Virus record (IMG/VR): IMGVR_UViG_3300022935_000005 | Span: 186,001 to 250,000 of that record | DNA: 64,000 nt | Reading direction: 5' to 3' (one strand) | Shown: positions 4,183 to 46,067 of the stretch, piece after piece | Position numbering within the stretch: the stretch's first letter is position 1 | Layout of the letters: each line of letters begins with the position of its first letter | Made by a program: the position numbers and the translations under genes | Notes under the pieces: model-generated | The model's database searches: none | Told to the model about the DNA's origin: nothing | The model's input: the letters and a program-made list of their open reading frames with translations, nothing else

Positions 4183-5265
4183 ATGTCAAGTAACAACAAA
4201 GATGATCAATACATTAACACACCTCAGGCGGATGACGATTTTGATTTCGTCATGGCATACGATGATGATCCTGCGGAGGGAGATGAAAGGCTCTTGCCTG
4301 AAAACTCTGCACGTTCCGCTATAAGCTGTGGTTTCATCGGAGTCGGGGGCGGAGGTGGAAAGCTTGCTAGCGCCTTTCTTGATGTAGGATTCAATAAGAC
4401 TCTACTAGTTAATACAACAGAGAAAGACCAGCCTGGCGGACTTGATGCAAACCACTTCCTATTAGTACCAGGCGCTGATGGTGTAGGTAAAGATGTCGAG
4501 TTGGGTAAGCAGGTTCTCGGTGAGAATTCAGCCATGGTTGAAGACGCTGTACGAACGCGTATTGGTCAGGTGGATTGGCTTTTCGTACTCGCTGGCGGCG
4601 GCGGAGGTACGGGTTCAGCTTGTCACGAGCTTCATTCTTCTCTATCACGTTATCTCGGGTCGGTAGAAGCTTCTGGCAATGTCGTCTATATAATTTCAAA
4701 GCCGACAGCTCAAGAGCTACTAAATCCAGCTATTAAGAAGAATTACTCTACCCTCATGTCGGATGTTGCCGATCACCCGCATATTGTGATCGACAATGAA
4801 AAACAGCTCCAGCTTCTGCGAGGCAAAGTTGGTATGCTTAATATGTTCCCTGCTGCTAATAAGAACTTTGCTAAGCTCTTTAGTCAAGTTCTCAAGCTTG
4901 CTGACGAGCACACCGAGATCCAGACTTTCGATAGTAAAGACCTAGAGCGTTGTCTAAAAGCTCCTGGTCGAATTGTTATTGGCTCTACGATCATCAAGGA
5001 TGTTAATAGAAATGACCTTGGGTCACTCGTCTATCAAGGATGCTTGCGTTCATCACCTTGCCCGACACCATCTGGTACTGCTACAACGGGTACACTACTT
5101 TTGATCGTCGACGGAAACATGGCTGCAGATCCTGATGTTAGTAGACGACTCGAATCAGCGTTCTCATATGTCGGTGGTAGAGCGGACGTCTTATTCTCGG
5201 GAGTTTATATGAAGGAAGGAATCCCTGGTTTAATTGGTCTAACGATGTTAGGTGGTTTGAAGTAA
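4183..5265 (+). CDS. tubulin/FtsZ-family GTPase (PhuZ-like)
   Basis: IGVGGGGGK, GADGVGKD, signature AGGGGGTGS, IVIDNEK; ATG 4183 follows GAGGAAG RBS. Confidence 0.88.
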   Translation: MSSNNKDDQYINTPQADDDFDFVMAYDDDPAEGDERLLPENSARSAISCGFIGVGGGGGKLASAFLDVGFNKTLLVNTTEKDQPGGLDANHFLLVPGADGVGKDVELGKQVLGENSAMVEDAVRTRIGQVDWLFVLAGGGGGTGSACHELHSSLSRYLGSVEASGNVVYIISKPTAQELLNPAIKKNYSTLMSDVADHPHIVIDNEKQLQLLRGKVGMLNMFPAANKNFAKLFSQVLKLADEHTEIQTFDSKDLERCLKAPGRIVIGSTIIKDVNRNDLGSLVYQGCLRSSPCPTPSGTATTGTLLLIVDGNMAADPDVSRRLESAFSYVGGRADVLFSGVYMKEGIPGLIGLTMLGGLK

Positions 5266-24283: not shown

Positions 24284-24361
24284 GGGGCTATAGCTCAATC
24301 AGGTCAGAGCAACCGGCTCATAACCGGCAGGTTGTAGGTTCAAATCCTACTAGCCCTACCA
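24284..24361 (+). tRNA. tRNA with CAT anticodon, probably Ile2 (copy 1)
   Basis: GGGGCTA/TAGCCCT acceptor, CCGG-CTCATAA-CCGG anticodon arm, GGTTCAAATCC, CCA end; adjacent to tilS. Confidence 0.92.
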
Positions 24362-24386
24362 AATGTTTAATCGGAGAAATGAATCA

Positions 24387-25040
24387 ATGATCCGACTTTC
24401 TTTTAAGCTTCCTTCTGAGATTGCAGTTGCCGTTTCTGGAGGGGCTGATTCTATGGCAGCCCTTGACTTTTTGCGACAGAATAGAAGGGTCAAGGTCCTC
24501 CACTTTAATCACGGCACCCACGGCGCCTCCGCCGCCGAGAGGGTAGTAACGAAGTATTGTGATCTACACAATCTAGAATTGGTGGTAGGCCATCTTGATG
24601 AATCCCCTGATTCGGGACAGTCACTTGAAGATTTCTGGCGTCAAGCTCGTTATTCTTTTTTTAGTGACAGTTGCGGTGGTCTTCCTGTAGTCACATGTCA
24701 TCACCTTGACGATGTGGCTGAGACATGGCTGTTCACCTCTTTGAATGGAAACCCTAAGCTTATTCCTTCTAAGAGAGACAATTACTTGAGACCCTTTCTG
24801 CAAACCCGGAAAGCCGTCTTTGAAGATTGGTGTGACAGGAAAGACGTGGTGTATCACTACGATGAGAGTAACAACGACACGAGGTTTAATAGAAACTTCA
24901 TCCGACATGAGATCATGCCTCGCGCGCTAAGGGTGAATCCGGGACTACATAAAGTTCTCCGTAAGAAGATCCAGCAAGATGTTGACGCTCATAGTTCTAT
25001 CCACCAAGAAATGCGGATGATGTGGGCAAGCCTCACATAG
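24387..25040 (+). CDS. tilS: tRNA(Ile)-lysidine synthetase, catalytic domain only
   Basis: AVSGGADSM PP-loop, HFNHG, RQARY, HHLDDVAETWL, LRPFL, DESN..RNFIRH. Confidence 0.88.
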   Translation: MIRLSFKLPSEIAVAVSGGADSMAALDFLRQNRRVKVLHFNHGTHGASAAERVVTKYCDLHNLELVVGHLDESPDSGQSLEDFWRQARYSFFSDSCGGLPVVTCHHLDDVAETWLFTSLNGNPKLIPSKRDNYLRPFLQTRKAVFEDWCDRKDVVYHYDESNNDTRFNRNFIRHEIMPRALRVNPGLHKVLRKKIQQDVDAHSSIHQEMRMMWASLT

Positions 25041-25318
25041 TAACAGAGTTTAAGAATGCTTAGTATTAAGACGGGTGATATTGTCAAGTTTAAACCAAAG
25101 TACTATGGCCCTAACCAACCTGACCAGTGGGTAGGTGTCACAGGTATAGTACTTGAGGTGATTGATGCCGACGGCTCGAACACTGGATTAGAAGTGCTAG
25201 TTCAGCATCCTGATGAGCCAGCACCGATACCTGTTTTTGCTTTTGTTTCTGACGTAGAAAAGGTCAACTGTGAAGTCTGTGATTGTTATCCTTGTGATTG
25301 CCACCCTTGGGACTAAAG

Positions 25319-25867
25319 ATGATTACGTATGATTTCCCTCCTTCTACTCGTTCAATGACACGTAGAGAGAGGTATGCTGAAAAGCAGAAGACAGCAGAGT
25401 ATCTACCAGTCATTATCGGCTGTGTTAATTTCGAGCATGATGGAAACCTTGCTTTCGTGATGCGTGCCGCTGCATGTTTTGGCGTGAAAGAGGTCCATGT
25501 TGTCGGATCTGTGCCCCACCGCGCAGAGCTAAAGAAGCTTTCTGGATCAATGTGCGATCTCGTAGAGATTGTTCAGCATAAGAGTCCTCGTTCATTTATC
25601 GAGTGGTGTACAGATAACCACGTGAAGATCGTAGCTGCTGAGCTTTGCGAAAAGTCTGAAAAGCTTCGTGATTATAATTTCATGTTTGAGGGTCTTACAT
25701 GCATCTTTACCGGACATGAAACATCTGGAGTCCCTGGAGAGATTATTCATGTTGCCGACTGCGTAGAGATCGATATGAGAGGCCCAGGCTTTTGCTTGAA
25801 CACCGCTCAGACGGCGAATATCATGTTGTATGAAGCATCAAAGCAGTACATCGGAGGTGCAGCTTGA
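25319..25867 (+). CDS. SpoU/TrmH-family RNA methyltransferase
   Basis: GNLAFVMRAAACFG, FTGHETSGVP, IDMRGPGFCLNTA. Confidence 0.85.
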   Translation: MITYDFPPSTRSMTRRERYAEKQKTAEYLPVIIGCVNFEHDGNLAFVMRAAACFGVKEVHVVGSVPHRAELKKLSGSMCDLVEIVQHKSPRSFIEWCTDNHVKIVAAELCEKSEKLRDYNFMFEGLTCIFTGHETSGVPGEIIHVADCVEIDMRGPGFCLNTAQTANIMLYEASKQYIGGAA

Positions 25868-26776
25868 AAGTAAAAGATCTTATCAAAATGTTAGAGCTCC
25901 AAGACCCTGAAGAGCGAGTCGTGATGAAGAACCTGCAGGCAGACCCTCGTGAGCGACCTCATGTATATGAACAGTTCAGAGTATATGAGCGTGACGGAGA
26001 CGTCGTGGTCGACGCTTACAGGAAGGTCTATAAGTGATTCGTAGCTGCGAATTCATAGAAGCGCACAATGTCGATGCGCTCGGAAATAAGATCAAGTCAA
26101 TATGGGTCCCTCGCCCGACAAGCTGGCTGGGAGGCTGGGCTCGACATCAGTGGCTTAAGAAACACTTCGGTCAAGAGTGCTCGATTGCGAGCCCTGAGTG
26201 GTGGAAAGTTTTGACAGACCGACACGGTCCACCAAAGGTACTTATCGAAGAAGACGGAGTTTACAGAGTGGAGAGCAAAGAATGAAGTGGGAAGTTAGAC
26301 CCCTCGAGCCCGACGGCTGGGGAATTTTTTTGATGCAGAAATTTTGCAAGACCGATGAACCTGTCTGTTATGCGAGGTCAGCCTCGAAAGAAGCAGCCGA
26401 GCGTATGGTCAAGCGGATGAACGAAGGATGAGGTGCCACAAGTGTGACGAGGGTGTCCTGCAGATAACAGCACTAACCCCGCCAGACGAAGGGTGGGCTA
26501 TTGGCTGTAATCGGTGTGATTATTCCAGTTGGATCCCAACAGCAGACCAAATGGTAACAGCACAGCCTATGATTGCGCCAACAAAGATCAAGTGGAAAAT
26601 CAAATGGATTCCTCAAAGGGAAAGCTCTTATCAAGGGCTATCTGAGCATCCACTAGATTGCCCTTGGCATAAAGATTGGCACGCTTGTAATTGTGGTTTA
26701 TATAATACAAAGGAAGACGAAGAATGAAAGTCGTCACCTAAGTCTAAACAAGAAGTCATAAATAATCTTCTAAAGC

Positions 26777-26805
26777 GTGTAAACGAACGGCCACTGTGAT
26801 ATAAT
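26777..26805 (+). promoter_or_regulatory. sigma70-like promoter of tRNA-Arg unit
   Basis: GTGTAA-17 nt-TATAAT. Confidence 0.7.
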
Positions 26806-26884
26806 CTAAATGTTGGTGGGGATGGAAACTAACCACCGCGACCTTTGAAAACTTAATAGCGAAAAGCATTTAGTTATTGTGAAT

Positions 26885-27166
26885 GCGCTCATAGCTCAGC
26901 TGGATAGAGCAACGGCCTTTAAGCAATAGGAGCCTCATATTGGAAACAGTATGTTGCGTACACTCTCAAATTCGGGGAAACCTTTAAAATGGCAATCCCG
27001 AGCCAAGCCTCGAAAGAGGAAGGTGTAGAGACTAAACGGGAGTGGCCTAAGTCCCAATGGGATATGGTTGAGAGATAGTCCAGACCACAAACACTTCGGT
27101 GGTAGCGAAAGCTATAGTGGTAAGCTAAGCCGTGGGTCCCAGGTTCGAGTCCTGGTGAGCGCGCCA
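26885..27166 (+). tRNA. tRNA-Arg(UCU) interrupted by a group I intron
   Basis: Exon 1 26885-26919 ends ACGGC-CTT; exon 2 27125-27166 begins CTAA-GCCGT and ends CCA; spliced loop CT-TCT-AA. Confidence 0.9.
26920..27124 (+). mobile_element. group I intron (205 nt, IC3-like, no ORF) in tRNA-Arg
   Basis: Core CAAATTCGGGGAAACC / GGCAATCCCGAGCCAAG / GTAGAGACTA / GATAGTCC; upstream exon U, terminal G; guide UAGGAG pairs with ligated CUU|CUA. Confidence 0.9.
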
Positions 27167-27316
27167 TTTATGTGGGGGACACAGACCAGAGAGAAACAGG
27201 TGATGCTGGCTCGTGGTTGCGTAAGCGTGGTCGAAGTACTGACCTTACAGGCTGTGTCTAGATGAGGAAGCTGGGAACCTCATCACTTTTTCTTCAAAAA
27301 ATATATCGCTGAAGTC

Positions 27317-27345
27317 TTGTAAACACAGGTCCTTGGAGATATAAT
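27317..27345 (+). promoter_or_regulatory. sigma70-like promoter of tRNA operon
   Basis: TTGTAA-17 nt-TATAAT. Confidence 0.7.
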
Positions 27346-27389
27346 CTAAAAGTAAAAGTTGGTGGAAATACCACACAACTTCAAAATAC

Positions 27390-27467
27390 GGGGCTATAGC
27401 TCAATCAGGTCAGAGCGTCCGGCTCATAACCGGCAGGTTGTAGGTTCAAATCCTACTAGCCCTACCA
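27390..27467 (+). tRNA. tRNA with CAT anticodon, probably Ile2 (copy 2)
   Basis: Identical to 24284-24361 except two bases (GAGC-GT-CCGG vs GAGC-AA-CCGG). Confidence 0.92.
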
Positions 27468-27472
27468 ATTTT

Positions 27473-27796
27473 GGCTGAATGGTGGAATCGGTATACACAG
27501 GAGACTTCGCGGGATCAAGGTAAAAACTTGATCAAATATTGAGCACCTTGGGAGAAATCCCATGAGTGAATCTGGTCAAATTCGGGGAAACCTTAACAGA
27601 TAAAGCTGATGGCAATCCCGAGCCAAGCCCGAAAGGGAAGGTGTAGAGACTTGACGGCCAGCCCTTAACAGGTAATGCTGAAGGTGAAGAGAAAGTCCAG
27701 ACCACAAACAACTTCGGTTGGCAGTGAAAACTGTAGAGGGTAAGAAAATCTCCCGGTCACATGACCTTGCGGGTTCGAGTCCCGCTTCAGCTACCA
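27473..27796 (+). tRNA. tRNA-Leu(UAA) interrupted by a group I intron
   Basis: Exon 1 27473-27507 ends GGAGA-CTT; exon 2 27745-27796 begins AAAA-TCTCC, long variable arm, CCA. Confidence 0.92.
27508..27744 (+). mobile_element. group I intron (237 nt) in tRNA-Leu(UAA)
   Basis: Same core motifs; guide TTGAG; terminal G; extra GATCAAG/CTTGATC hairpin near the 5' end. Confidence 0.9.
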
Positions 27797-27952
27797 ATCA
27801 TCGATATATTTATCAACAACAAAATCGTCATTGGGTGTTTCGGTGACGTTGCAACGCCGCTGGCGCCATAGTACATTATACCTAGTACATGTGAACCCAG
27901 GAGAAACACCCTCCTGGTAGTAACATCATTCCGACATATTCATAACACATAT

Positions 27953-28027
27953 TGGGGAGTAACTCAGTGGTAGAGTGCGCGGCTGTTAACCGCTCGGTCG
28001 TGGGTTCGAATCCCACCTTCCCAGCCA
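27953..28027 (+). tRNA. tRNA-Asn(GUU)
   Basis: GCGG-CTGTTAA-CCGC, GGTTCGAATCC, CCA. Confidence 0.93.
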
Positions 28028-28033
28028 TCTTTC

Positions 28034-28108
28034 GCTCCCATAGTTTAACGGTAAGAATTCGGCGTTTTCACCGCTGCGGTAGGGGTTCGATTCCCCTTGG
28101 GAGTACCA
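28034..28108 (+). tRNA. tRNA-Glu(UUC)
   Basis: CGGCG-TTTTCAC-CGCTG, GGTTCGATTCC, CCA. Confidence 0.9.
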
Positions 28109-28143
28109 AAACTTTTCGCTATTTCAAATATTGATATAATTTA

Positions 28144-28417
28144 GGGCCTATAGCTCAACAGGTAGAGCATCGGACTTTCAATGGGAGCTTCATCAGGTAA
28201 CTGATGTCGAATAACTGCTCAAATTCGGGGAACTCTTAACAGGTAATGCTGATGACAATCCCGAGCCAAGCTTCGAAAGAAGAAGGTGTAGAGACTAGAC
28301 GGGCAGCACCCCACGTGGGTGAAGGGATAGTCCAGACCACAAACACTTCGGTGGTAGCGAAAGCTATAGTGGTACGTAATCCGCAGGTTCAGGGTTCGAG
28401 TCCCTGTGGGCCCACCA
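28144..28417 (+). tRNA. tRNA-Lys(UUU) interrupted by a group I intron
   Basis: Exon 1 28144-28178 ends CGGA-CTTT; exon 2 28377-28417 begins TAA-TCCG and ends CCA; spliced loop CT-TTT-AA. Confidence 0.87.
28179..28376 (+). mobile_element. group I intron (198 nt) in tRNA-Lys, inserted after anticodon position 35
   Basis: Core CAAATTCGGGGAA / CAATCCCGAGCCAAG / GTAGAGACTA / GATAGTCC; 3' end nearly identical to the Arg intron; terminal G. Confidence 0.87.
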
Positions 28418-28630
28418 TTCTACTTCAAGGAACACCACTATGTTAGTTACAAGACTGTCAGCGCCTTCGCCGGGTATGCCAGATTACTTTGAACTGTACT
28501 CTAAGTGGTGGGCTGTAGCTGTTCGCACTGGAGAAAATCATGCGCTACAGGAAGCTCATCGCTTTGCGAGACTAGCTGAAGAGTTCGGTCAAGCGATTAT
28601 TCATGATGACGAAACACAAGAAGATTTTTA

Positions 28631-28716
28631 GCCTGAGTGATGGAATGGTAGACATGAAGCACTCAAAATGCTTTGCTCTTAAGAGCGTGTGAGTTCGAAT
28701 CTCACCTCAGGCACCA
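28631..28716 (+). tRNA. tRNA-Leu(CAA)
   Basis: AAGCA-CTCAAAA-TGCTT, long variable arm, CCA. Confidence 0.93.
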
Positions 28717-28734
28717 GTTTATTTTTTATTTTGT

Positions 28735-28810
28735 TGGGGTATGGCGCAATAGGTAGCGCAGCGGCCTTTGACTCCGCAGGTTCTAGGTTCGAGTCCTAGT
28801 GCCCCAGCCA
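28735..28810 (+). tRNA. tRNA-Gln(UUG)
   Basis: TGGGGTA/TGCCCCA acceptor, CT-TTG-AC loop, GGTTCGAGTCC, CCA. Confidence 0.9.
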
Positions 28811-29056
28811 GTTTCTATAAGAGAGTGTGATATGGATACAGCAACTTTCATTCTAGGTCTTGGTGTAATTATTATAGGAGTTTTGTCCCTGATCGTGGTC
28901 AAGCTGCCTAAGTTCCCAGGACCGCCCACCGACGTAGAAGATGAAGATCCAGGACGTGAAGTATGAAGTTTCGACCTGAACTTCCTGACGTTTTTGGCTT
29001 TTTTGTTATCATTCTTTACGCTGTTTTTATTGTGAAGCTTTTTTGTGGTTAGCGCG

Positions 29057-29085
29057 GTGTAAATGATCTTGGGGTTTCCTATAAT
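29057..29085 (+). promoter_or_regulatory. sigma70-like promoter
   Basis: GTGTAA-17 nt-TATAAT. Confidence 0.7.
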
Positions 29086-29147
29086 CCTATAGATAGATTA
29101 AAGGATAGAAAAAACTGATGAACAAAAGTGTTTAATACCTTCTTATC

Positions 29148-29314
29148 GGGGGTAGGCTTCAGAAGCTTAGGGTCCTGCGGTTTCTGGTGACATTCGGGAA
29201 GCTTTTTGCTGTGTATGTGAAACATGTCAAGGCCCCTTGGCATGAAGTAACTTTGGAAAAGTTGTTCTTTTGCGTTTAAATGAAGAAGGTTATGCCTTCC
29301 CGATTCTACCCCCA
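29148..29314 (+). ncRNA. candidate structured non-coding RNA of unknown family
   Basis: Closing stem GGGGGTAG/CTACCCCC with four internal helices; lies between a promoter and tRNA-Thr. Confidence 0.5.
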
Positions 29315-29320
29315 CTTTTT

Positions 29321-29396
29321 GCCGCCGTAGCTCAGTTGGTAGAGCCATCGATTTGTAATCGATCTGTCGGAGGTTCGAGTCCTCTCGGCGGCTCCA
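29321..29396 (+). tRNA. tRNA-Thr(UGU)
   Basis: ATCGA-TTTGTAA-TCGAT, GGTTCGAGTCC, CCA. Confidence 0.93.
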
Positions 29397-29428: not shown

Positions 29429-30097
29429 TTGATGCCCGAAGTACTAGATCAAGCGATATACCTTTTAGCAGCCGCCTCTCTCGGTTCTATGATCGGACTA
29501 GAGAGAGAAGTGCATGGCCAACCTGCTGGTCTTAGGACACACATGATCCTCTCCACTGGGGCTGCGCTAGCTGCAATACTATCCATATCATATTCTCAAT
29601 TTCTGTCAAATCCAGACTTGCCGTCTGACCCTGGTCGCATTGTAGCTCAAGTAGTCAGCGGAGTGGGTTTTCTCGGCGCCGGCGCGATTATGAAGATGGG
29701 CGTTACTGTTAAGGGGCTAACAACGGCTAGCTCACTTTGGACGACTGCTATCGTAGGTATTGCGTGCGGTAGCGGCTATTTAGAGCTTGGGGCTATAACG
29801 ACGGTCCTCGTGTTTGTGATCTTGACAATTATTAATAAGGTTGAGAAAGCCTTGTTGACGACGTACAAAACTCACACTCTTAAAATTACTCTAGATGATA
29901 GACCTGGGATCGTGAAAGACGTCAAGACTTGCCTCGAGGAAAATAACGTCAAGCTTGTGTCTTTAAGCGCTGGTATGCCTGATAGAGAGAGTCTAAATCT
30001 TTCCATGGTGATCAGGAAACCTGAAGATCTTGGCATGGACAGTCTAATAAATACTTTGAACGGGTTCGCCGAGACTCGGTCGATGGATTTAAAATGA
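29429..30097 (+). CDS. MgtC/SapB-family membrane protein with ACT-like C-domain
   Basis: IGLERE..PAGLRTH, DPGRIVAQVVSGVGFLGAG, GLTTASSLW. Confidence 0.9.
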   Translation: MMPEVLDQAIYLLAAASLGSMIGLEREVHGQPAGLRTHMILSTGAALAAILSISYSQFLSNPDLPSDPGRIVAQVVSGVGFLGAGAIMKMGVTVKGLTTASSLWTTAIVGIACGSGYLELGAITTVLVFVILTIINKVEKALLTTYKTHTLKITLDDRPGIVKDVKTCLEENNVKLVSLSAGMPDRESLNLSMVIRKPEDLGMDSLINTLNGFAETRSMDLK

Positions 30098-30160
30098 ACC
30101 ATGTAAATCTTCACCGACATTTCTATTATCTAATATAAAACCAGGAGGTAACTGTGCCAA

Positions 30161-30526
30161 GTGTACTATCAAGCTAAGCAGCTAGCAATGAACAATGGTC
30201 GTCCTTACCATCTAGCAGCTATTCTGAGAAGGAATGGTCGAGTCGTTAAGGTCGGCGAAAATACTAATAAGACACACCCACGGTTCAAGCGCCAATATAA
30301 AGACGGTACGTGGGGATCCCATATGCATGCTGAAATGAACGTTCTACGTTTCGCTCAGCCTGGCGATGAGATTGAGGTGATGCGCTTTACCAAGTGTAGT
30401 GATCATCCGACGATGGCAAAGCCTTGTTCCATTTGTGAGTCAGAGATTCGTAAGTCTGGAATCAAGCGTGTCAAGTACACAAACTGGGATGGTGACTGGG
30501 AAGTGCTTGAAGTATCGAATACTTAA
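30161..30526 (+). CDS. zinc-dependent nucleoside/nucleotide deaminase
   Basis: HAE..KPCSIC zinc motif. Confidence 0.75.
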   Translation: MYYQAKQLAMNNGRPYHLAAILRRNGRVVKVGENTNKTHPRFKRQYKDGTWGSHMHAEMNVLRFAQPGDEIEVMRFTKCSDHPTMAKPCSICESEIRKSGIKRVKYTNWDGDWEVLEVSNT

Positions 30527-30550
30527 TCTCGAAAAAGAGGTAACATCTTA

Positions 30551-32023
30551 ATGATGCATTATAACACAGACTCAAAAATTCTCGCTGAGATATCAGTGAA
30601 TAAGGGGGAGAGCGTAAAGCTAAAGACAGGTGCTATCTGTACTGAGACTGGCACCTACAAGGGTCGAGCTCCTTCTGCTAAATCTTACGCTATAGATGAG
30701 ATTACGAGGGACAAAATTGACTGGTCTGCCAATAGAGGGATATCAGAAGATGAATTCGCGGAAGAGCTTTCTGCGTTCCAAGATTATAAGGGTACAATAG
30801 TTCCCTTATTTTGTCAAGAGCTGCAAGCGGTTAGAGATACAGGTCATAGAACTGACATTGTCGTTTTTACGGAAATGGCTCACCACGCATTGTTCGCCAG
30901 GAACATGTTCATTACGGATGTCGTGGGATTCGGGAAAACACAGCAGCCATGGCGGATTTATCACTTCCCAAAAAAAGAGGAAGAAGCTAAAGTACTAATA
31001 TCTTTCAAGAAGAAAGCGATTCTGATCACTGGGACATTTTATTCGGGAGAGATCAAGAAGAGTATTTTTTCGGTACTAAATTTCGAGTTTCCTCAATCTG
31101 GCCACTTGCCGATGCATTGCTCAGTGAATGTAGACAAAGAGCGAAGGAACCCTGCTGTTTTCTTCGGTCTGTCAGGAACAGGAAAGACAACTCTTTCTTC
31201 TGACGAAAATCGCATTTTGATCGGTGACGACGAGCATGGGTGGACCGATAGCGGCTTGACTAATTTCGAAGGCGGTTGCTATGCGAAGACGATTCGACTA
31301 TCTAAAGAAGCTGAACCCCAGATCTGGGATGCGTGCAATAAGCCTGGAACAATATTGGAGAATGTTGCCTTTAATGAAGACCTGATGCCGGATTTTGATG
31401 ACGGCACTCTTACCGAGAACAGCAGAGCTTCATACGCATGTTCTAGTGTTCCCGGCGCTGATCATAAAGGGTATGTCAATGAACACCCTGAGAACGTTAT
31501 CATGCTTACCTGTGACGCATTTGGTGTGCTACCTCCAGTGATGAAACTGTCACCTGACGAGGCTGTTACACAATTTTTGCTTGGTTATACCGCGAAAGTA
31601 GCCGGTACTGAAGCTGGTGTCGTAGAACCGCAAGCAACATTCTCTGCATGCTTTGGCGCTCCCTTCATGCCTCTGCACCCTCGAGAGTATGCTGCTATCT
31701 TAAGGGAAAAGTTGGTAAAACACGGCACCTCGTGTTGGCTGGTGAATACTGGCTGGACGGGAGGCTCTTACGGAGTGGGAAGAAGAATGCCGATATCTAC
31801 TACGAGAGAGATTATCCAGAAGATTCATACCGGTGAGTTACGAGACTGCGCTACATTCGTTCATGAACCAACAGGCTTTACAGTACCGGACTGCGATAGT
31901 ATTGAAGAAACAATTCTTTACCCAGAAAAGGGCTGGAGCTCTAGAGAAGATTATGATTCCAAGTCTGCTGAGCTAATGTCTTTGTTCCGGGAACAGATGA
32001 AAAACATTGGGATCTCTAGTTAA
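30551..32023 (+). CDS. pckA: phosphoenolpyruvate carboxykinase (ATP)
   Basis: YSGEIKKSIF, MHCS, FFGLSGTGKTTLS, IGDDEHGW, NFEGGCYAK, TENSRASY, FSACFGAPF. Confidence 0.93.
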   Translation: MMHYNTDSKILAEISVNKGESVKLKTGAICTETGTYKGRAPSAKSYAIDEITRDKIDWSANRGISEDEFAEELSAFQDYKGTIVPLFCQELQAVRDTGHRTDIVVFTEMAHHALFARNMFITDVVGFGKTQQPWRIYHFPKKEEEAKVLISFKKKAILITGTFYSGEIKKSIFSVLNFEFPQSGHLPMHCSVNVDKERRNPAVFFGLSGTGKTTLSSDENRILIGDDEHGWTDSGLTNFEGGCYAKTIRLSKEAEPQIWDACNKPGTILENVAFNEDLMPDFDDGTLTENSRASYACSSVPGADHKGYVNEHPENVIMLTCDAFGVLPPVMKLSPDEAVTQFLLGYTAKVAGTEAGVVEPQATFSACFGAPFMPLHPREYAAILREKLVKHGTSCWLVNTGWTGGSYGVGRRMPISTTREIIQKIHTGELRDCATFVHEPTGFTVPDCDSIEETILYPEKGWSSREDYDSKSAELMSLFREQMKNIGISS

Positions 32024-32121
32024 CTGGCTGTTTTTCACTATTATATTTTCACATAATGAGACAAGTTCAGAGGTGAAAAGAGTTCGCTTCTAGTAACCGT
32101 TAATTAGTCTGAAAAGACATG

Positions 32122-32143
32122 AGAGGGAACCACGGTTCCCTCT
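32122..32143 (+). terminator. perfect inverted repeat between pckA and the ZorB-like gene
   Basis: AGAGGGAACC-AC-GGTTCCCTCT; weak U-tract. Confidence 0.35.
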
Positions 32144-32168
32144 TACCATCTACAAAAAGGGTCTAGAC

Positions 32169-32873
32169 TTGAGTAACAGAAATTTGCAAATTCCTTGGGC
32201 AAATATCTCTGATATGATGTCTGCCTTGATGATGGTGTTTTTGCTGATCAGCGTTACATACAGCTCTCAAGTGAAAAACAAGTCTGAGCAGCTAGAAGAG
32301 AAAAATAAGAAGATCCACAAGATTACGGCGGATTTCTCAGACAGCAGGTATGAGATATACGCTAGTTTGAATGAAGCTTTTTCTCATAAGTTTGAAGAGT
32401 GGCACGCTACGCTAGACAGAGAAACTCTGACTTTACGCTTTAACAATCCTGCTATCTTATTCGAGCCGGGTAGCGACAGGTTGACGCCAGCTTTTGAAAA
32501 GATACTTGCTGACTTGTGGACAAATTACATAGAAGTGCTTCGTAGATACCCAGAAGATGTGGCTGAGGTCAAAATACAAGGTCATACTTCTTCTGAATGG
32601 TCTGATTCCACCATCGAAGAGTCTTATTTCAACAACATGAAACTGTCTCAAGAAAGGACTCGCTCTACGCTTATCTTCTGCTATAACTTGACCCCTATGG
32701 ACAAAAGGGATTGGGTGATAGAGAATGTTACTGCTAACGGTATGTCTTTTGCTAGAACAATTAAGGCACCTGACGGCTCTGAAGACGTGGTGAGGTCAAG
32801 AAGAGTAGAGTTTACAGTCGTTGTCAATTCACATATCGCTCTAGAAAAGATAGGAGAAGCTTTAGATGATTGA
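32169..32873 (+). CDS. ZorB/MotB-like membrane protein with OmpA-type peptidoglycan-binding domain
   Basis: PWANISDMMSALMMVFLLI TM with conserved Asp; ILFEPGS, IQGHTSSEW, NMKLSQER, SRRVEF. Confidence 0.8.
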   Translation: MSNRNLQIPWANISDMMSALMMVFLLISVTYSSQVKNKSEQLEEKNKKIHKITADFSDSRYEIYASLNEAFSHKFEEWHATLDRETLTLRFNNPAILFEPGSDRLTPAFEKILADLWTNYIEVLRRYPEDVAEVKIQGHTSSEWSDSTIEESYFNNMKLSQERTRSTLIFCYNLTPMDKRDWVIENVTANGMSFARTIKAPDGSEDVVRSRRVEFTVVVNSHIALEKIGEALDD

Positions 32874-33597
32874 GCACATCACATGGACCACTTTTCTTCC
32901 ATTGATATTCTTGGTTCCGCTCATACCACCCTTAAATCGCGTATTTTCTTTCATTGACCCCTCGAAGATGTCATATGGAGCCGCGACTTCTGGGGTTCTT
33001 CTGACTTTTTTTGGCGTTTGGCAGGGTCTAATAGGCTTTGACATTACTAACACTTCTGAGAGTCTTCCTTTTTTGATCGAGGGCTTGAAGATTGCGTTTG
33101 GTTCGTCGGTGGTTGGCCTCGGCACGAGCATGGTCATTAATCTCATTTTCGTTACTAATGATTTATCTGAGGCTGACAGCACCGCTAAAATTGTGGAGCA
33201 TCTGGAAGAGGTAAGGGTGAGCTTAGAGAAGTTCTCTGAAACTTCCACACAGTTGCAGACCACAGCGCTTGTATCTGCTATCGAAACTCTTATAACAGAT
33301 CTAGAGATGGGAATTAATACGGAGACAAGGGAAGTGATGTCACGTTTTCGAACATCTGTTGAGTTTTTGAGAGAATGGCAAGAAAAATACGTCGATGAAA
33401 TCAAAAATGTTACTGAAGCTATGGATAAAAACGCGATTGTTACGCAGGCGACATCAGCACAGCTAGATAGGACTAATGAAGTGCTAGCAGAGCTAGCGCC
33501 CGTTACAGAAACCATAGCGGATAGCATTGGTTGGGTCCGGACAGCGCTTCCAGCGATGAGAAAGAGAAACAACACTGGAGATAAAAGTGAAGAATGA
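32866..33597 (+). CDS. ZorA/MotA-like proton-channel subunit with short helical tail
   Basis: TSGVLLTFFGVWQGLIGFD..LIEGLKIAFGSSVVGL TM pair followed by a coiled-coil-like tail. Confidence 0.72.
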   Translation: MIEHITWTTFLPLIFLVPLIPPLNRVFSFIDPSKMSYGAATSGVLLTFFGVWQGLIGFDITNTSESLPFLIEGLKIAFGSSVVGLGTSMVINLIFVTNDLSEADSTAKIVEHLEEVRVSLEKFSETSTQLQTTALVSAIETLITDLEMGINTETREVMSRFRTSVEFLREWQEKYVDEIKNVTEAMDKNAIVTQATSAQLDRTNEVLAELAPVTETIADSIGWVRTALPAMRKRNNTGDKSEE

Positions 33598-34147
33598 GTT
33601 CGTGATTTTTGTTGGTCCGATGTTCGGTGGCAAAACAACAAAGCTGTTAAGCGCGATTGACCGATACAAATACCAGGGCAGAGATATCCATGTCTTTAAG
33701 CCTATTGTTGACGAAAGATATTCTGCTTCTGAAGTGGTTACCCATTGGGGTGCAAAAATACCTGCGACCCGGATTAACTCCGAGTCGATGTACGATACAT
33801 TACAACCCTTTTTCTATCAGGCGTCTGACAAAGACAGGGCTGTTATCGCTGTTGATGAAGCTTTTATGATAGGTGGCATCGGTGATGCTTTGGTTCAGCT
33901 ATTTAAGAATGGTCACACAATATTGGCGTCGTCTTTACAGCTGTCCTCTGACTTCACACCATATAAGGAGCTTGCAGCCATGCTGCCTTACGCCACGAAG
34001 GTAGAAGTCTGTCCAGCTGTCTGTTCTATATGCGGGGCGGATGCATACTACACGGAAAAGATCGGAGGCAGATCTGACCACGGTATCGAGGTCGGCGGTG
34101 CAGATATGTATCAGCCGAGATGTTTTAATCATTTTTTGAAGGAGTAA
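33587..34147 (+). CDS. tdk: thymidine kinase
   Basis: GPMFGGKTTKL, VDEAF, AVCSICG, IEVGGADMYQPRC. Confidence 0.92.
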   Translation: MKNEFVIFVGPMFGGKTTKLLSAIDRYKYQGRDIHVFKPIVDERYSASEVVTHWGAKIPATRINSESMYDTLQPFFYQASDKDRAVIAVDEAFMIGGIGDALVQLFKNGHTILASSLQLSSDFTPYKELAAMLPYATKVEVCPAVCSICGADAYYTEKIGGRSDHGIEVGGADMYQPRCFNHFLKE

Positions 34148-34151
34148 ATAC

Positions 34152-34577
34152 ATGAGGAAAGGGATAATTGCCGGTAATTTTGACGTGATCCATCCGGGGT
34201 ACGTTCGCTTTTTCAAAGATGCGAAAGAGAACGCATGCGATTGGCTCATAGTCGCTCTTCACGTTGATCCGACAATCGAACGTCCACTTAAGGCAAAGCC
34301 GATACTTTCGGCGGATGAGCGAACAGAGATCTTACTTTCCCTAAAGTACGTAGATGAAGTCTTATATTACAACACTGAGAAAGAGCTTACACAGGTCTTG
34401 TCGAGCGTACCAGACCATGTAAGAGTGATAGGATCAGATTACCTCGGGAAAGAATTCACTGGTAAGTCTCTCGCAGGTGATATTTATTACCATAAGCGCG
34501 ACCACAATTGGTCAACCACGAGGTTCAAGACTGAAATAGCACAGCAATGTATGAGACAGGGTTACATAGACAGATAG
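34152..34577 (+). CDS. HIGH-family cytidylyltransferase (TagD/RfaE-like)
   Basis: GNFDVIHPGY, LKYVDEV, IGSDY, WSTT. Confidence 0.8.
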   Translation: MRKGIIAGNFDVIHPGYVRFFKDAKENACDWLIVALHVDPTIERPLKAKPILSADERTEILLSLKYVDEVLYYNTEKELTQVLSSVPDHVRVIGSDYLGKEFTGKSLAGDIYYHKRDHNWSTTRFKTEIAQQCMRQGYIDR

Positions 34578-34864
34578 GCCACCAAGTCTTTTTTGTTATT
34601 TTAAATCTTCTCGATTATCTAACAACTCATACCTTGATCTCGACTGACGGGCAAGAGTTGATGCCTGTCGGTAACGCTGTTATAGAAAATTATGGTCTTA
34701 TCGGGCTCTTGGTATTTAAGCTGTCATTGACATTTTTAGTCATTCTACTGGGTAAGGTATTCAGGTTCAAAGATTCACTGTGGGAACTATTGAACGGCTT
34801 CCTGACAGCGGTCGTTGTTTGGAACAGCACAGGGATATTTCTGTCAATGTTCTTCCCCGTCTAG
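34547..34864 (+). CDS. small membrane protein
   Basis: NLLDYLTT..ELMP and three hydrophobic segments. Confidence 0.5.
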   Translation: MYETGLHRQIGHQVFFVILNLLDYLTTHTLISTDGQELMPVGNAVIENYGLIGLLVFKLSLTFLVILLGKVFRFKDSLWELLNGFLTAVVVWNSTGIFLSMFFPV

Positions 34865-36759
34865 GCGGTGGGATCTTCGTACCATTCTTCCATGAATGAT
34901 TCACCGGTGATTTCTTCTAGTCTTCTGATCATTTTTTCCATATTGATTTTTACAACTTTACCAGTTTTGACATTTCTAGAAAAATACTGCCACTCACCTT
35001 CTTCGTTGTGAGGGGATATTTGCGTAACATTGCCTGCTTCGTCTCTTACAAAAACTTCAGCAGAAGAAGCAACGTCTTTGGAGTAAATGTGAGCGTAATT
35101 GGTTACAGTGCTAGGATCACTTGTTGCTTGCATCGCAATTCTGCCATCAATCTCTAAATCTCCTAAAAACCTAGAATTACCTTTTACATCTAGTTCAGCA
35201 CTTGGGTTGCTAGTTCCAATTCCCACACTTCCGGAAGTGTTAAAATGAATAGTACTCGACACATCACTTCCTAGTGTTGCTTCAGACACAATCGATGCAT
35301 CACCACCTAAAGTGCCATGATATCCTCCGACATAATCTTTTATTCCATCTTGACCTGTGGTGTCAATGTGGTCTCCCATTTTCCACCAGTGGACTAAATC
35401 ACTGTATGCAGAGTACTCTTCCATGTTCTTTACATTTCCGTCGTTGTAAAGTTCTTGAACTTCTGTGGGAGTAAGTACGCGATTAAACCTACACACATCT
35501 GCTAATTTACCAGCGAGCGCATTACTTGTTGAGTCGTTAACATCGATGCCGCCTAAAGTTGTTGGTATTGAGGTTTGAGGCATCCCGGAATAGTTCGTTG
35601 AGGTTTGTGTTGTGAAATATATTAGGTTGGGTACGTTCAAATCATTATTGATTGATGATCCACCGCCTCCCTCATAAATACTTCCATTCCCAACTGGATG
35701 TGAGTTCTTATAAACTCTTATTCCGGACGTCGCTTTGCTTCCATCGTAAGTAACACAAAGATGAAACCAAGTATTTTCTGCGTGGAAAAATTTACTATTT
35801 GCAGAGGTTTGGGCTACCGCTATCCTGTTTGATGTACTAAAGGTTCCAACACCGTTTTGATCTGGGTCTGCATATAAAATAATTTGTAGCAGACCGCTTC
35901 CAACCCCAATATAAATTTCGCCATCATTAGGTGAAGTAGACCTTTTTGTATATAACCCACCTGCATGCTTCCCGTTTGTTCCATCGTAGTCTATCTCTTC
36001 TAGATTGACCCACATAGAAATAGTGAATGCTTTGTCAGTGCCCTGGCCAGAACTAAATGAAGTGTCTGTTGTAGCATCAGAAATAGTTACTTCATCAAAC
36101 GGAGAGAGTCCGTCGAGCTGAATTGCCTTCTGGTTTACTAATGAGTCTGATTTTATTTGCACAGACCCAGTGACGCTAAAACTTCCTGTCACAAATGTAT
36201 TACCTTGAAGTTTTGAAGTACCTTCTACATGAAGCACGTCAGTTGGCGTTGACGTTCCAATTCCGACTTTATCGTTCGCACCATCAACATAAAGCATATG
36301 TGTGTTGTTGTCTGACTCAACTCGAAAGTTAACTAGCGAGTCTGATGTTTGGTTAACGACAACCTCTGGAACAGCACCATCCAATCGCAATCCTTCACGG
36401 GAAGTTCCTGCGTCACTTGCTTTAAAAACGATATGTTTGTTTGAGTATAGGTTTTCAATTAGGATATTATTTGATGAATTGATCCCAATCAGAGCTCGAT
36501 CACTATCATCTTCGGTAAATCTAATGAACGTTTCGTCACTCTGTCCTTCAACTCCGTTTATAGTGAGTTTCTCTGACGGAGTCTCGGTACCGATGCCTAC
36601 ATTCCCATGATCGTCGATGATAGCTCTTTCCGAACCGTTCGTTGAGAATCTAATTTTATTTTCATTAGGGTTCTGTTCAACTTCTACCTTCGTGTCTCCA
36701 TCTTTATCTTCTAGGGTGTCCTCAGTGATGGCACCGGCTCTAATTTTGGTAATTGGCAT
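34861..36759 (-). CDS. tail fibre / receptor-binding-like protein with LamG (concanavalin-like) domain
   Basis: Repeated GNVGIGT-x-P motifs; FTISMWV..WFHLCVTYDG..GKLADVCRFNRVLTPTEVQELYN. Confidence 0.75.
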   Translation of the reverse strand: MPITKIRAGAITEDTLEDKDGDTKVEVEQNPNENKIRFSTNGSERAIIDDHGNVGIGTETPSEKLTINGVEGQSDETFIRFTEDDSDRALIGINSSNNILIENLYSNKHIVFKASDAGTSREGLRLDGAVPEVVVNQTSDSLVNFRVESDNNTHMLYVDGANDKVGIGTSTPTDVLHVEGTSKLQGNTFVTGSFSVTGSVQIKSDSLVNQKAIQLDGLSPFDEVTISDATTDTSFSSGQGTDKAFTISMWVNLEEIDYDGTNGKHAGGLYTKRSTSPNDGEIYIGVGSGLLQIILYADPDQNGVGTFSTSNRIAVAQTSANSKFFHAENTWFHLCVTYDGSKATSGIRVYKNSHPVGNGSIYEGGGGSSINNDLNVPNLIYFTTQTSTNYSGMPQTSIPTTLGGIDVNDSTSNALAGKLADVCRFNRVLTPTEVQELYNDGNVKNMEEYSAYSDLVHWWKMGDHIDTTGQDGIKDYVGGYHGTLGGDASIVSEATLGSDVSSTIHFNTSGSVGIGTSNPSAELDVKGNSRFLGDLEIDGRIAMQATSDPSTVTNYAHIYSKDVASSAEVFVRDEAGNVTQISPHNEEGEWQYFSRNVKTGKVVKINMEKMIRRLEEITGESFMEEWYEDPTA

Positions 36760-36865: not shown

Positions 36866-38803
36866 ATGGGAGCACTTGGCGGCCACATGGCTCATCTTCA
36901 TGAGTCATTAGAACTTACGTTTGATGAACTTTCGACTATTCTTGATAGTGTAGCAAACGCTGACATATCGGCGACTGAAAAGGTTGATGGTCAAAACCTG
37001 TTTTTGACAGTGAAGAGTGACGGGTCTATCAACACTGCCCGTAATGGCGGGGACCTAAAGAAGGGTGGAATGACTCCTAATGAGTTTGCTGCTAAGTGGA
37101 AGGGTCACCCCGCGGAGAGCGCTTTCACTAAGGGGTTCGAGGCAATCTCTCAAGCTATTAAATCCCTTGACCAGTCGACTTTAAATGACTTGTTTGCCAA
37201 TGGGACGAGATACGTTAATATGGAAGTCATGTACCCAGGCAATCCGAACATGATCGTGTATGATGCCGGCAACGTGGTACTTCATAACTTCCAAACGTTC
37301 GATTCTTCTGGCGCTCCCGTCGATGATCCAGACGCCCGCACCGCATTTCAACAGCTTGTTTCTGCTGTCGATGAAGCTGAGTCTGATGTCGATGGTGAAG
37401 CTTGGCTAGTGAAGGGTCCTGTAATCGCCCAGCTGCAGAGGCTAGCAGATGGGACAGCGCTCAAGGAAGTTCAAGCAGCGATCCAGAGGATTGCTTCGCC
37501 AGTGGGGATGTCTGCGACACTTGGGGATCTCGCAGAGTTGCGCTTGAGAGCCACGGCAATTCAGGCCGGTATACCAGAAAATAAGGTCGACCAGATGATG
37601 GACGCTGCGTTCGAGCGTGAGGGCGCTGCGTCTGTTAGGGACATCAAGAAAGGTTTGACGAAAGAACAGCAGGGCGTTGTTTCGAAGTTGGCAACTAAAG
37701 CCAACGCCAGGAAAGCGGTTGGTGCAGCCATGAAGCCGCTTGAATTAGCGATTACTGACTTTGCGATTGAAGTCCTCAGAGGGATGGAGAGCTACTTTGT
37801 TTCTGATACTGATAAGGAATTGGCCCGACAACGGAATGAGCTTTCTAGGGCCATTGACTACCTCGAGGGACTAGCTACATCAGGTGACGAGGAGGTCGGT
37901 AAGATGGTCGACCGCCAGCTTGAGAAGTTGACTGACATCGAGAATCAGATTAATAGTACGATGGAGGGTATCGTCTTTGAATATCCACCTGGATCGGGAG
38001 AACTTAAGAAGCTTACCGGATCATTTGCGATGATGAATCAATTGGTTGGGAGAGCAAAGCGAGCAGGTATGCCTTCTGGTAGTGCGGTCGAGGAATCGTA
38101 TGGTCGAGCTGCGTTCTCTTCTAGTGAATCAGCTTCGATTTACGACTTGATCTTGAATGAGCAAGCCTTCGTCGATAAGGGAAAGAGGGTCGGGTTGATT
38201 CCTGTCTCTGGAAAGCCGTATCACGCAGGACATCATTATCTTGTAGAGCAGGCAGCTGCCGATAATGACGAAGTTGTGCTTTTCGTTTCTACCTCTGATA
38301 GGAAAAGGAAAGGTGAAATGTCTATCTTGGGTGTAGACATGCTTCAAGTCTGGAAGCAAGAGCTAGAGAAGATTATGCCTACAAATGTCCGGGTAGAGTA
38401 CGGAGGATCTCCTGTTCGTAAAGTCTATGACACCATTGGGAAAGCGTGTGAAGCGGGTGACGCTGAGGAAACCTACGTCATCTATTCAGATCCCACAGAC
38501 ACGATGCAGAACTACCCGCAAGTGAATAGAGACAAATACATGCAGCCTATGTGTCGAATGGGACAAGTGGTTTTTGCGGCAGAAGAAGACCCGACAAGGT
38601 TTGAGAGAGGGGAGGGTTCACCAGATGTAAGCGGTACGAAAATGCGCGCCGCCATGGCAGCTGGAGATTTTGAAACCTTTGCAGCTGGTATGCCCGCAGG
38701 GGTTAACTCAAGAAATGTCTGGAGCATCTTGACTCACGATGAACCTTCTCCCACGTCGGAATCCAAGAAGTACTCTCTGGTATCAGCCCTTTACGGAAGT
38801 TAG
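36866..38803 (+). CDS. fusion of ligase-like nucleotidyltransferase domain and HIGH-family nucleotidyltransferase
   Basis: TEKVDGQNL (KxDG), MEGIVF, KLTG; then GKPYHAGH..VSGTKMR. Confidence 0.65.
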   Translation: MGALGGHMAHLHESLELTFDELSTILDSVANADISATEKVDGQNLFLTVKSDGSINTARNGGDLKKGGMTPNEFAAKWKGHPAESAFTKGFEAISQAIKSLDQSTLNDLFANGTRYVNMEVMYPGNPNMIVYDAGNVVLHNFQTFDSSGAPVDDPDARTAFQQLVSAVDEAESDVDGEAWLVKGPVIAQLQRLADGTALKEVQAAIQRIASPVGMSATLGDLAELRLRATAIQAGIPENKVDQMMDAAFEREGAASVRDIKKGLTKEQQGVVSKLATKANARKAVGAAMKPLELAITDFAIEVLRGMESYFVSDTDKELARQRNELSRAIDYLEGLATSGDEEVGKMVDRQLEKLTDIENQINSTMEGIVFEYPPGSGELKKLTGSFAMMNQLVGRAKRAGMPSGSAVEESYGRAAFSSSESASIYDLILNEQAFVDKGKRVGLIPVSGKPYHAGHHYLVEQAAADNDEVVLFVSTSDRKRKGEMSILGVDMLQVWKQELEKIMPTNVRVEYGGSPVRKVYDTIGKACEAGDAEETYVIYSDPTDTMQNYPQVNRDKYMQPMCRMGQVVFAAEEDPTRFERGEGSPDVSGTKMRAAMAAGDFETFAAGMPAGVNSRNVWSILTHDEPSPTSESKKYSLVSALYGS

Positions 38804-45170: not shown

Positions 45171-46067
45171 GTGAAATTTGCTGCCGGCCTGCTTACGCTA
45201 TTTCTACTATCCAGTAGCACCGCTGCTGATGAAAAGGCGTCTGAGTATATACTCTACAAGCATGAGCTACCAGACTGGGATGAAAGGTTTCAGTTAGCAG
45301 CTGGTACAGCGAAGGATAGATGCCAGCTCCATGAATGCTTGTGCTCTGTTTCTCGCCCGGTATCCTCTTCGCAATCGACCTTTGGCACAGGCACAGACCG
45401 CAGACATTCTCTCTATTTTTCAGAGGCAGGTTATGTCCCGAAAGAGAGTCAGAAAAGAAGTCTGGAGAACTGGATCAAGAAGCATTCTTTTAGTACGTCT
45501 ATCACACTCATCGGATACACAGATAGTTGCGGTACCCACGATTATAATGAGAAGCTGGTAAGAAACAGAGTCTCTGAAGTACGGCAAACGCTAACGGGCA
45601 TGGGATACCCGAAGGCTAGTTCTATCATTTTTAGGGCGGAAGCTAGTTACGGTCATGATCCTTCTTCCCGAAGGGTCGATGTGATAGTTCACCGAACAAG
45701 CCGGTTAACAACCATGATTGAAAAGGTACAAGCAGATGTCTACTTAATAGATGCCTCTGGTTCGATGTGGGGTAGCTGGAGAAAATGGTCTGATATAGTC
45801 GCTGTTTCTTTTAAACCCGGTTCGAGGATATACCTTTCGAAGTCTGAAGACTGCTATTCTGGACAATCACTTGACAAGGTGTCTCCGTCAGGCGCAACAG
45901 AAATATGGTACTCTTACTGGAAGGTATTGGATAAGATGAAGGCAGGAGAGACTCTAGTGGTGATATCAGACTTTCGATCAACTGTTCCACTTACTCGTAG
46001 AGAGGCGGAAATGATTGAAGAGAAAGTCAGGTCGAAGGGCATAAAGGTTATAGCTCTGAAGCCTTAA
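45171..46067 (+). CDS. secreted OmpA-like peptidoglycan-binding domain plus vWA-like domain
   Basis: Signal peptide; IGYTDSCGTHDYNEKLVRNR..SRRVDV; YLIDASGSM..VISD. Confidence 0.7.
   Translation: MKFAAGLLTLFLLSSSTAADEKASEYILYKHELPDWDERFQLAAGTAKDRCQLHECLCSVSRPVSSSQSTFGTGTDRRHSLYFSEAGYVPKESQKRSLENWIKKHSFSTSITLIGYTDSCGTHDYNEKLVRNRVSEVRQTLTGMGYPKASSIIFRAEASYGHDPSSRRVDVIVHRTSRLTTMIEKVQADVYLIDASGSMWGSWRKWSDIVAVSFKPGSRIYLSKSEDCYSGQSLDKVSPSGATEIWYSYWKVLDKMKAGETLVVISDFRSTVPLTRREAEMIEEKVRSKGIKVIALKP

Follow-up and report, generated by a model that had tools for sequence, protein, structure and literature searches.

A ZorB-like and a ZorA-like gene on a jumbo phage contig

The window analysed here, a stretch of 64,000 nt that covers approximately positions 186,001–250,000 of the 280,913 bp IMG/VR contig IMGVR_UViG_3300022935_000005, carries two overlapping genes whose products are related to ZorB and ZorA, the subunits of the ZorAB motor of Zorya defence systems. 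This pair is inherited as an overlapping B-then-A unit across a diversified clade of marine jumbo phages. The first gene (32169..32873, plus strand) has a TTG start and encodes a ZorB2-like protein of 234 aa. The second gene (32866..33597, plus strand) encodes a short ZorA2-like protein of 243 aa and has an ATG start with an upstream GGAG Shine-Dalgarno sequence. Stop and start overlap by 8 nt (32866..32873, plus strand, ATGATTGA), with the GGAG 9 nt upstream. As read from the sequence, this junction makes translational coupling of the two genes probable. A preliminary description of the window had reported an overlapping pair, a MotB-like gene with an OmpA-type domain followed by a MotA-like gene. 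Both open reading frames (ORFs) and their overlap are found in the window as reported, and the motif strings pointed out at that time (PWANISDMMSALMMVFL; TSGVLLTFFGVWQGLIGFD...LIEGLKIAFGSSVVG) are present in the proteins.

In the ZorB-like protein, an N-terminal transmembrane (TM) helix that bears Asp15 (D15) is followed by a fused OmpA-type peptidoglycan-binding domain. The protein matches the PADLOC ZorB2 profile nearly end to end (E 7e-71, profile positions 16–235 of 238), and scored 175.8 bits against the NCBIfam ZorB2 model compared to 26.6 bits against the MotB family. The score for Pfam MotB_plug was 9.9 bits (cut-off 24). The NCBIfam ZorB2 score is below the equivalog cut-off of 400 bits, which marks the phage ZorB as a divergent subfamily. 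Among solved structures the phage ZorB is closest to chain A of PDB 8vvi (E 1.5e-32), the entry for the ZorA5B2 complex of type II Zorya from Sulfuricurvum kujiense (PMC11890865), and D15 aligns with the critical ion-coupling residue D21 of the S. kujiense ZorB. Residue conservation was counted over about 109 ZorB and 35 ZorA sequences of the phage clade. D15 was kept in 95/95 ZorB sequences covering this position, and Y153, N156, L159, S160, R163, R211 and R212 were conserved to 100%. The residues from Y153 to R163, which constitute the peptidoglycan-binding motif (Y, N..LS..R), are the same as in cellular ZorB2. In Escherichia coli ZorB, residues equivalent to the peptidoglycan-binding set are needed for Zorya function.

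The ZorA-like protein has three TM helices (approximately residues 7–19, 32–57 and 60–96), which are followed by an all-helical cytoplasmic tail of about 140 residues. It matches PADLOC ZorA2 (E 7.5e-24) and chain F of 8vvi (E 8e-7). Since residues 16–106 of the query align to residues 15–103 of this chain, no part of the N-terminus or of the three TM helices is missing. Comparison of the phage ZorA family to cellular ZorA2 by hhalign resulted in a probability of 99.8% (E 8e-28), with residues 34–192 aligned to profile positions 62–263 of 465; this match spans just the TM core and the proximal tail of the phage protein. The tail alone is collinear with the proximal ZorA2 tail as well (E 8e-8). 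Its length of about 140 residues, versus 278 in S. kujiense ZorA2, bears out the short helical tail that had been noticed before. The last approximately 50 residues showed no match to anything, including the distal ZorA2 tail. An internal deletion within the tail was considered and rejected, as comparison of the C-terminal 50 residues to the distal ZorA2 tail gave a probability of 3%. The tail ends in a lineage-specific conserved tip (approximately residues 193–232): within the phage family the conservation of the tail equals that of the TM helices, and invariant residues reach P229 and R232. The score against NCBIfam ZorA2 was 41.1 bits and covered profile positions 55–108 of 550 only (equivalog cut-off 700), and there was no match to Pfam MotA_ExbB. 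In an AlphaFold2 model of the monomer, the predicted local distance difference test (pLDDT) values were 70–80 for the TM helices, while the helical tail was of low confidence (mean pLDDT 56).

Comparison of hidden Markov models thus places the pair with the type II Zorya profiles and with 8vvi, and not with MotAB, ExbBD or TolQR; a clustering with generic MotAB/ExbBD families, which would speak against a Zorya origin, is not seen, given the ZorB2 and MotB family scores and the lack of a MotA_ExbB match. As in type II Zorya, the phage ZorB matches ZorB2 over its full length and shares with it the TM Asp and the OmpA-type residues that bind peptidoglycan, and the phage ZorA has the three-TM core with conserved Thr/Ser positions and a proximal tail collinear with ZorA2. 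The pair differs from type II Zorya (ZorA-ZorB-ZorE) by its B-then-A order, by the lack of ZorE, by a ZorA of 243 aa (284–963 aa in cellular loci, these values being upper bounds) with a lineage-specific end, and by scores under both NCBIfam equivalog cut-offs (175.8 vs. 400 and 41.1 vs. 700 bits). It is also carried by lytic-type jumbo phages and not by cellular defence islands. With the ZorAB proteins of type I Zorya (E. coli, Shewanella; PDB 8vvn; PMC11946911) the pair shares the 5:2 motor superfamily, a peptidoglycan-binding ZorB and a ZorA tail. The similarity is, however, far lower (E 4e-4 for 8vvn_B, and E 1e-9 or worse for ZorA1 profiles), and the type I ZorA, which acts together with ZorC and ZorD, is a protein of about 700 aa, of which about 500 residues form the tail. 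The overall 5:2 ion-driven architecture and the TM Asp on the B subunit are also common to MotAB and ExbBD/TolQR, but no flagellar, TonB or TolA context surrounds the phage pair, and neither MotB_plug nor MotA_ExbB is matched above the cut-off.

The neighbours of the pair are an ATP-dependent phosphoenolpyruvate carboxykinase (PEPCK) gene upstream (PEPCK_ATP, E 2.6e-162) and a thymidine kinase (TK) gene downstream (E 2e-31), the start of which overlaps the stop of the ZorA-like gene by 11 nt. They had been named as pckA and tdk rather than ZorC/D/E, and no ZorC, ZorD or ZorE is found nearby. The intergenic region between the PEPCK and ZorB-like genes (32024..32168, plus strand, 145 nt) contains a hairpin, and a weak sigma-70-like match lies at 32020–32047. 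The hairpin (32122–32143) is GC-rich, has an 11 bp stem and is located about 25 nt before the TTG start, without a T-run after it on the plus strand. The predicted RNA fold of the 145 nt region has a z-score of −3.2, and none of 200 shuffled sequences folded as well. Promoter-like matches upstream of the pair were not more frequent than in shuffled sequence.

Sequence matches at 100% identity to the region 30551–34577 of the window were found in four salt-marsh metatranscriptome libraries, and an assembled metatranscriptome piece (32356–33558) crosses the junction of the two genes. The matches in these libraries point to a salt-marsh or coastal habitat of the phage.

Comparison with cellular Zorya loci and with other phages

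We compared six phage genotypes (the window and the loci L001, L003, L008, L009 and L010) to 80 named cellular loci from GTDB. The ZorA lengths of the cellular loci are ORF-based and therefore represent upper bounds. All six phage genotypes have the order B then A, while 75 of the 80 cellular loci have A then B and none has B then A. No ZorA was detected in the other five cellular loci, three of which have ZorB at a contig edge, so that A precedes B in 75/75 informative loci; in the cellular locus L053 the order is A-E-B. The inverted order given in the preliminary description is thus real and is kept in every related phage locus examined, and the tight B-then-A junction recurs in the loci L001–L010. 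The phage ZorA proteins comprise 242–258 aa, those of the cellular loci 284–963 aa. ZorE was detected in 66 of the 80 cellular loci and in none of the phage genotypes. It had also been stated that Zorya is normally organized as zorA-zorB with a long ZorA tail. The order agrees with our data, but a short ZorA is not confined to phages, since ZorA2 proteins of 284 and 312 aa occur in canonical zorA-zorB-zorE loci. A short ZorA alone is therefore compatible with genuine type II Zorya.

Among the cellular loci, ZorA-ZorB pairs without a downstream match to the ZorE profile were observed in Thioalkalivibrio (L066, L067, L070, L072, L073) and in Poribacteria (L047, L051, L062). These loci may use other effectors or may be variant Zorya types.

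The nearest cellular relatives of the phage ZorB (43–44% identity) are located in zorA2-zorB2-zorE2 loci, in which the third gene encodes a DUF8245 protein that is classified as ZorE by PADLOC. In an IQ-TREE analysis of ZorB, which comprised 15 phage sequences and 40 named cellular ones, all phage sequences were on one side of a branch with support of 100/98, and a tree of 172 ZorB sequences (FastTree) agreed with this picture. No cellular genome had a ZorB with more than 44% identity to the phage clade, and a scan of GTDB (185,579 species) with motifs from the ZorA tail revealed no cellular genome carrying these motifs. The existence of a single phage clade and its distance from the cellular forms fit one capture, followed by diversification within phages.

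Searches for an effector were negative in the phage loci. Not one six-frame segment of the 64 kb window was matched by the ZorE profile at a threshold of E <= 10, none of 22 large ORFs of the window was recognised as an effector by PADLOC, and ZorE was not detected in the 6–10 kb flanks of the related loci L001–L010. A scan of IMG/VR with the ZorE alignment also returned nothing, which is a weak negative, as it used one degenerate pattern of low sensitivity. Within this range (the window and the 6–10 kb flanks of its relatives) the absence of effector genes, which had been part of the preliminary description, is confirmed. In descriptive terms its view of the locus holds: a phage-borne pair from type II Zorya ZorB and ZorA, with inverted order, a short tail and no ZorC, ZorD or ZorE nearby.

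The contig is viral. Three IMG/VR contigs, the longest of 280,913 bp, carry the identical locus with identical proteins, and the window shows 7 tRNAs, a tail-fibre-like gene (PHROG, E 4e-13) and compact, overlapping genes on the same strand. Auxiliary genes in the window encode MgtC, a dCMP-deaminase-like protein, PEPCK, TK, a cytidylyltransferase and an IMPDH/GMP reductase. The ZorA-like family comprises 114 clusters (50–100% identity) with full-length members of 234–262 aa; the clusters are mostly marine (Tara, JGI, ENA) and come from contigs of up to 274–281 kb. ZorB-like proteins form a matching clade of more than 100 clusters on contigs of 238–302 kb. Between the window and L001 or L003 the pair shows 56–66% identity, compared to 60% for TK and 52–61% for a DUF5658 protein. 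As the pair diverges at rates like those of TK and DUF5658, there is no sign of unusually fast evolution. In L009 and L010 the pair is retained although its neighbours are PIN-PhoH, UvdE, Hsp20 or Hsp70 genes instead of PEPCK and TK. Among deposited phages a DNA similarity search matched just a PEPCK fragment, and there was no close relative in 50,697 deposited phage records. A tblastn search of these records with both proteins returned two unverified faecal fragments with a canonical long ZorA followed by ZorB, and tblastn with two conserved proteins revealed no close cultured relative of the phage lineage. A conserved ZorB-ZorA pair, re-ordered and shortened, is thus a feature of an uncultured group of marine jumbo phages, which appears to have put a sensor of host immunity to a use of its own.

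A more distant relative, L100 (IMGVR_UViG_3300007770_001284, 254,743 bp), lacks both ZorB and ZorA; its homologue of the 645-aa protein encoded further downstream in the window and its TK are 67% and 62% identical to those of the window. In L100 the slot between a TilS-like gene and TK (L100:3905-5531) holds a gene for a 166-aa protein of the MotA_ExbB family (34.9 bits, cut-off 22.9), a gene overlapping it by 4 nt that encodes a 203-aa protein with an Asp-bearing, ExbD/TolR-like TM helix, and a gene for a TM protein of 172 aa. Like the pair of the window, the L100 pair is small, resembles a 5:2 motor and occupies the same variable slot of a related jumbo phage. It differs in being non-homologous, in its A-then-B order, in an A protein of 166 aa without a tail and in a B protein without OmpA domain. 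Neither the window nor the other phage loci contained a homologue of the L100 pair, and an IMG/VR search for further pairs of this kind returned just the same phage. Judged from the sequences, one ion-motor pair may here have taken the place of another, non-orthologous one. Although L100 is the only case, it gives a hint that what occupies the slot is "a 5:2 motor" and need not be a Zorya mimic.

Possible roles of the motor pair

As possible functions of the pair, the preliminary description had listed a decoy, superinfection exclusion and a modulator of the membrane potential. Conservation extends to the ion-coupling Asp, the peptidoglycan-binding site, the channel helices and the tail tip, which argues for a working, self-assembling motor and against a remnant or a passive mimic. 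We favour the view, to which we assign a probability of about 45%, that the pair is a self-contained, phage-owned derivative of the type II ZorAB motor, which acts autonomously and signals via the new tail tip to a partner that does not belong to Zorya; its most plausible tasks would be envelope sensing or superinfection exclusion. Such a motor would have originated by one capture from a cellular zorA-zorB-zorE locus, with subsequent loss of the nuclease and of the distal tail and with re-ordering of the genes. By homology to 8vvi, five ZorA-like subunits would assemble around a ZorB-like dimer in the inner membrane. The dimer would anchor the complex to peptidoglycan, and ion flow via Asp15 would drive rotation of ZorA as in cellular ZorAB. 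The output would then be directed through the new tail tip to a partner outside Zorya and not to a Zorya nuclease. The likeliest use would be that of a sensor and transducer of the envelope state in infection, for example for detecting and excluding superinfecting phages or for timing the infection programme. The pair is probably co-expressed with the adjacent genes of nucleotide metabolism.

Several observations weigh against this view. No partner or effector has been identified, no third gene recurs beside the pair in the phage loci, and the effector searches of the phage itself cover 64 kb of its approximately 281 kb genome. The AlphaFold2 monomer gives low confidence for the tail. In E. 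coli, ZorA with truncated tails still assembles the motor (PMC11946911), but all tail truncations abolish defence by type I Zorya (PMC11946911), and the short phage tail could therefore also mean that signalling was lost. The pair is absent from the more distant relatives L100–L104 and is therefore accessory at a wider scale. Finally, the metatranscriptome matches are consistent with transcription of the pair, but carry-over of DNA is possible.

The E. coli truncations also bear on a different explanation, in which the phage proteins act as an anti-Zorya decoy or dominant negative: phage subunits would co-assemble with or compete against type II ZorA and ZorB of the host, and the short tails would poison the pentameric bundle, so that no signal reaches ZorE. 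The phage tail without a distal part would suit this role, as would the finding that tail-truncated E. coli ZorA assembles yet gives no defence. The same motifs are found in the TM cores of the phage proteins and of their cellular counterparts, which by sequence would permit mixed assembly, and type II Zorya occurs in marine Gammaproteobacteria (such as Pseudoalteromonas, Colwellia and Psychromonas). A decoy would, however, need one subunit and neither a working Asp nor a peptidoglycan site, whereas no functional residue is missing from either phage protein. The tail has not simply lost its end but finishes in a strongly conserved tip, and short ZorA2 proteins (284–312 aa) work in canonical ZorE-bearing loci. 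An old, monophyletic phage clade with at most 44% identity to cellular ZorB is a poor fit for a mimic that has to match its host, and the pair is fixed in a wide subclade of the phages, whereas type II Zorya is a minority system. The known anti-Zorya factors are small proteins without relation to the pair, and in L100 the same slot is taken by an unrelated ExbB/ExbD-like pair. Considering these points, we regard a decoy function as unlikely.

The L100 pair leads to the view that the slot may serve for a generic ion-motive-force module. Here the ZorB-ZorA pair would be a stator-like energiser or a controlled ion path for Tol/Ton-like maintenance, uptake, or energetics together with MgtC and PEPCK, without any link to immunity. 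The MotA_ExbB and ExbD/TolR-like proteins encoded between the TilS-like gene and TK in L100 would be in agreement with such a role, as would the position of the pair among auxiliary metabolic genes including MgtC. However, only one such replacement was found, and the slot is a variable region. A peptidoglycan-anchored ZorB together with a cytoplasmic tail is the architecture of a signal transducer and not of a Ton/Tol energiser, and no TonB- or TolA-like partner adjoins the pair. Zorya I and II do not depolarise cells (PMC11890865), which by analogy would also speak against a controlled ion path. We therefore have considerable doubts about this explanation. Similar caution applies to a broader and rather speculative idea, according to which jumbo phages carry ion-driven 5:2 rotary motors as interchangeable modules of the infection cycle, derived from Zorya in the window and ExbB/ExbD-like in L100. 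These motors would sense or act on the envelope via the ion-motive force of the host and, with an output through a tail tip without cellular counterpart, would represent an undescribed viral use of such machines.

It is considerably less probable that the pair is the sensor of a complete but dispersed superinfection-exclusion system, with the nuclease encoded elsewhere in the 281 kb genome. The effector search left room for such a gene by covering 64 of about 281 kb, and phages do carry defence systems, with Zorya matches in marine viral contigs listed in a survey of 2026. Zorya genes are, however, normally contiguous, ZorE being adjacent in 66 of the 80 cellular loci, and neither the ZorE profile at E <= 10 nor PADLOC on the 22 large ORFs pointed to an effector in the window; the IMG/VR scan for ZorE was negative too, though of low sensitivity. 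A decaying remnant, or cellular DNA mis-binned as viral, to which the small number of classical structural hallmark genes in the window might point, can practically be dismissed in view of the three IMG/VR contigs (up to 280,913 bp) that share the identical locus, the tail-fibre-like gene, 7 tRNAs and compact overlapping genes, two intact ORFs with more than 100 clusters each and invariant functional residues, and the lack of any cellular genome with the B-then-A, short-ZorA form.

Our literature search revealed no description of a phage-borne, effector-less and re-ordered ZorBA pair; the 2026 survey merely lists Zorya matches in marine viral contigs. Of all parts of Zorya, ZorAB is understood least, including the signal that it perceives in the envelope. 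In a minimal, effector-free ZorAB with the shortest known tail, which is under viral selection, motor and sensor stand apart from any nuclease output. If the autonomous, phage-owned sensor that we favour, or an energiser, is confirmed, viruses would have co-opted rotary ion motors, and the pair would offer a compact model for structural and biophysical work. If the pair is a decoy, it would be the first inhibitor aimed at the ZorAB sensor. Homology-based defence annotation of viral metagenomes may call such incomplete pairs "Zorya".

Further features of the window

Just upstream of the pair, the region 29429–32023 codes for the full-length ATP-dependent PEPCK and for a protein of the MgtC family (Pfam MgtC, E 7.7e-39) whose C-terminal region is ACT-like; both are kept in relatives. 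MgtC and PEPCK of this phage are unusual auxiliary metabolic genes that touch the energy metabolism of the host. An array of 7 tRNAs (Met x2, Asn, Glu, Leu, Gln, Thr; 24284–29396, plus strand) is located just upstream of this block of auxiliary genes.

The 645-aa protein mentioned above (36866–38803) shows 73–88% identity in relatives, and its best match among phages is to Microcystis phage Mel-JY01 (26% identity). Its C-terminal part is cytidylyltransferase-like, and the N-terminal region contains a KVDG motif, which we take to be of the ligase/nucleotidyltransferase active-site kind. A weak tblastn match to this protein from the N-terminus of one ZorE (E 0.05) was not supported by PADLOC and was taken as chance. 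A second OmpA-domain protein of 298 aa is encoded at 45171–46067 (Pfam OmpA, E 9e-5, below the gathering score). It was rejected as a further ZorB, as it is not ZorB-like by PADLOC, and the 113-aa ORF upstream of it had no family match.

At 4090–5265 a protein of 391 aa is encoded, which has a weak match to the Tubulin/FtsZ GTPase domain (E 7.4e-5, 23.5 bits, cut-off 33) and may be a divergent phage tubulin. Deposited phages contained nothing that matched it. Between 48000 and 52000 the GC content is 0.54–0.57 compared to about 0.45 elsewhere, and several ORFs are on the minus strand; this segment may have been acquired recently. The tail-fibre-like gene (34861–36759, minus strand) lies inside a block of genes that are otherwise on the plus strand, and its product has a lectin-like Laminin_G_3 domain. 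The orthologue in L001 (L001:10141-13086) encodes 981 aa with an extra lectin-like domain (PF07953), and the gene is absent from L003. The tail-fibre gene thus represents a variable host-recognition module.

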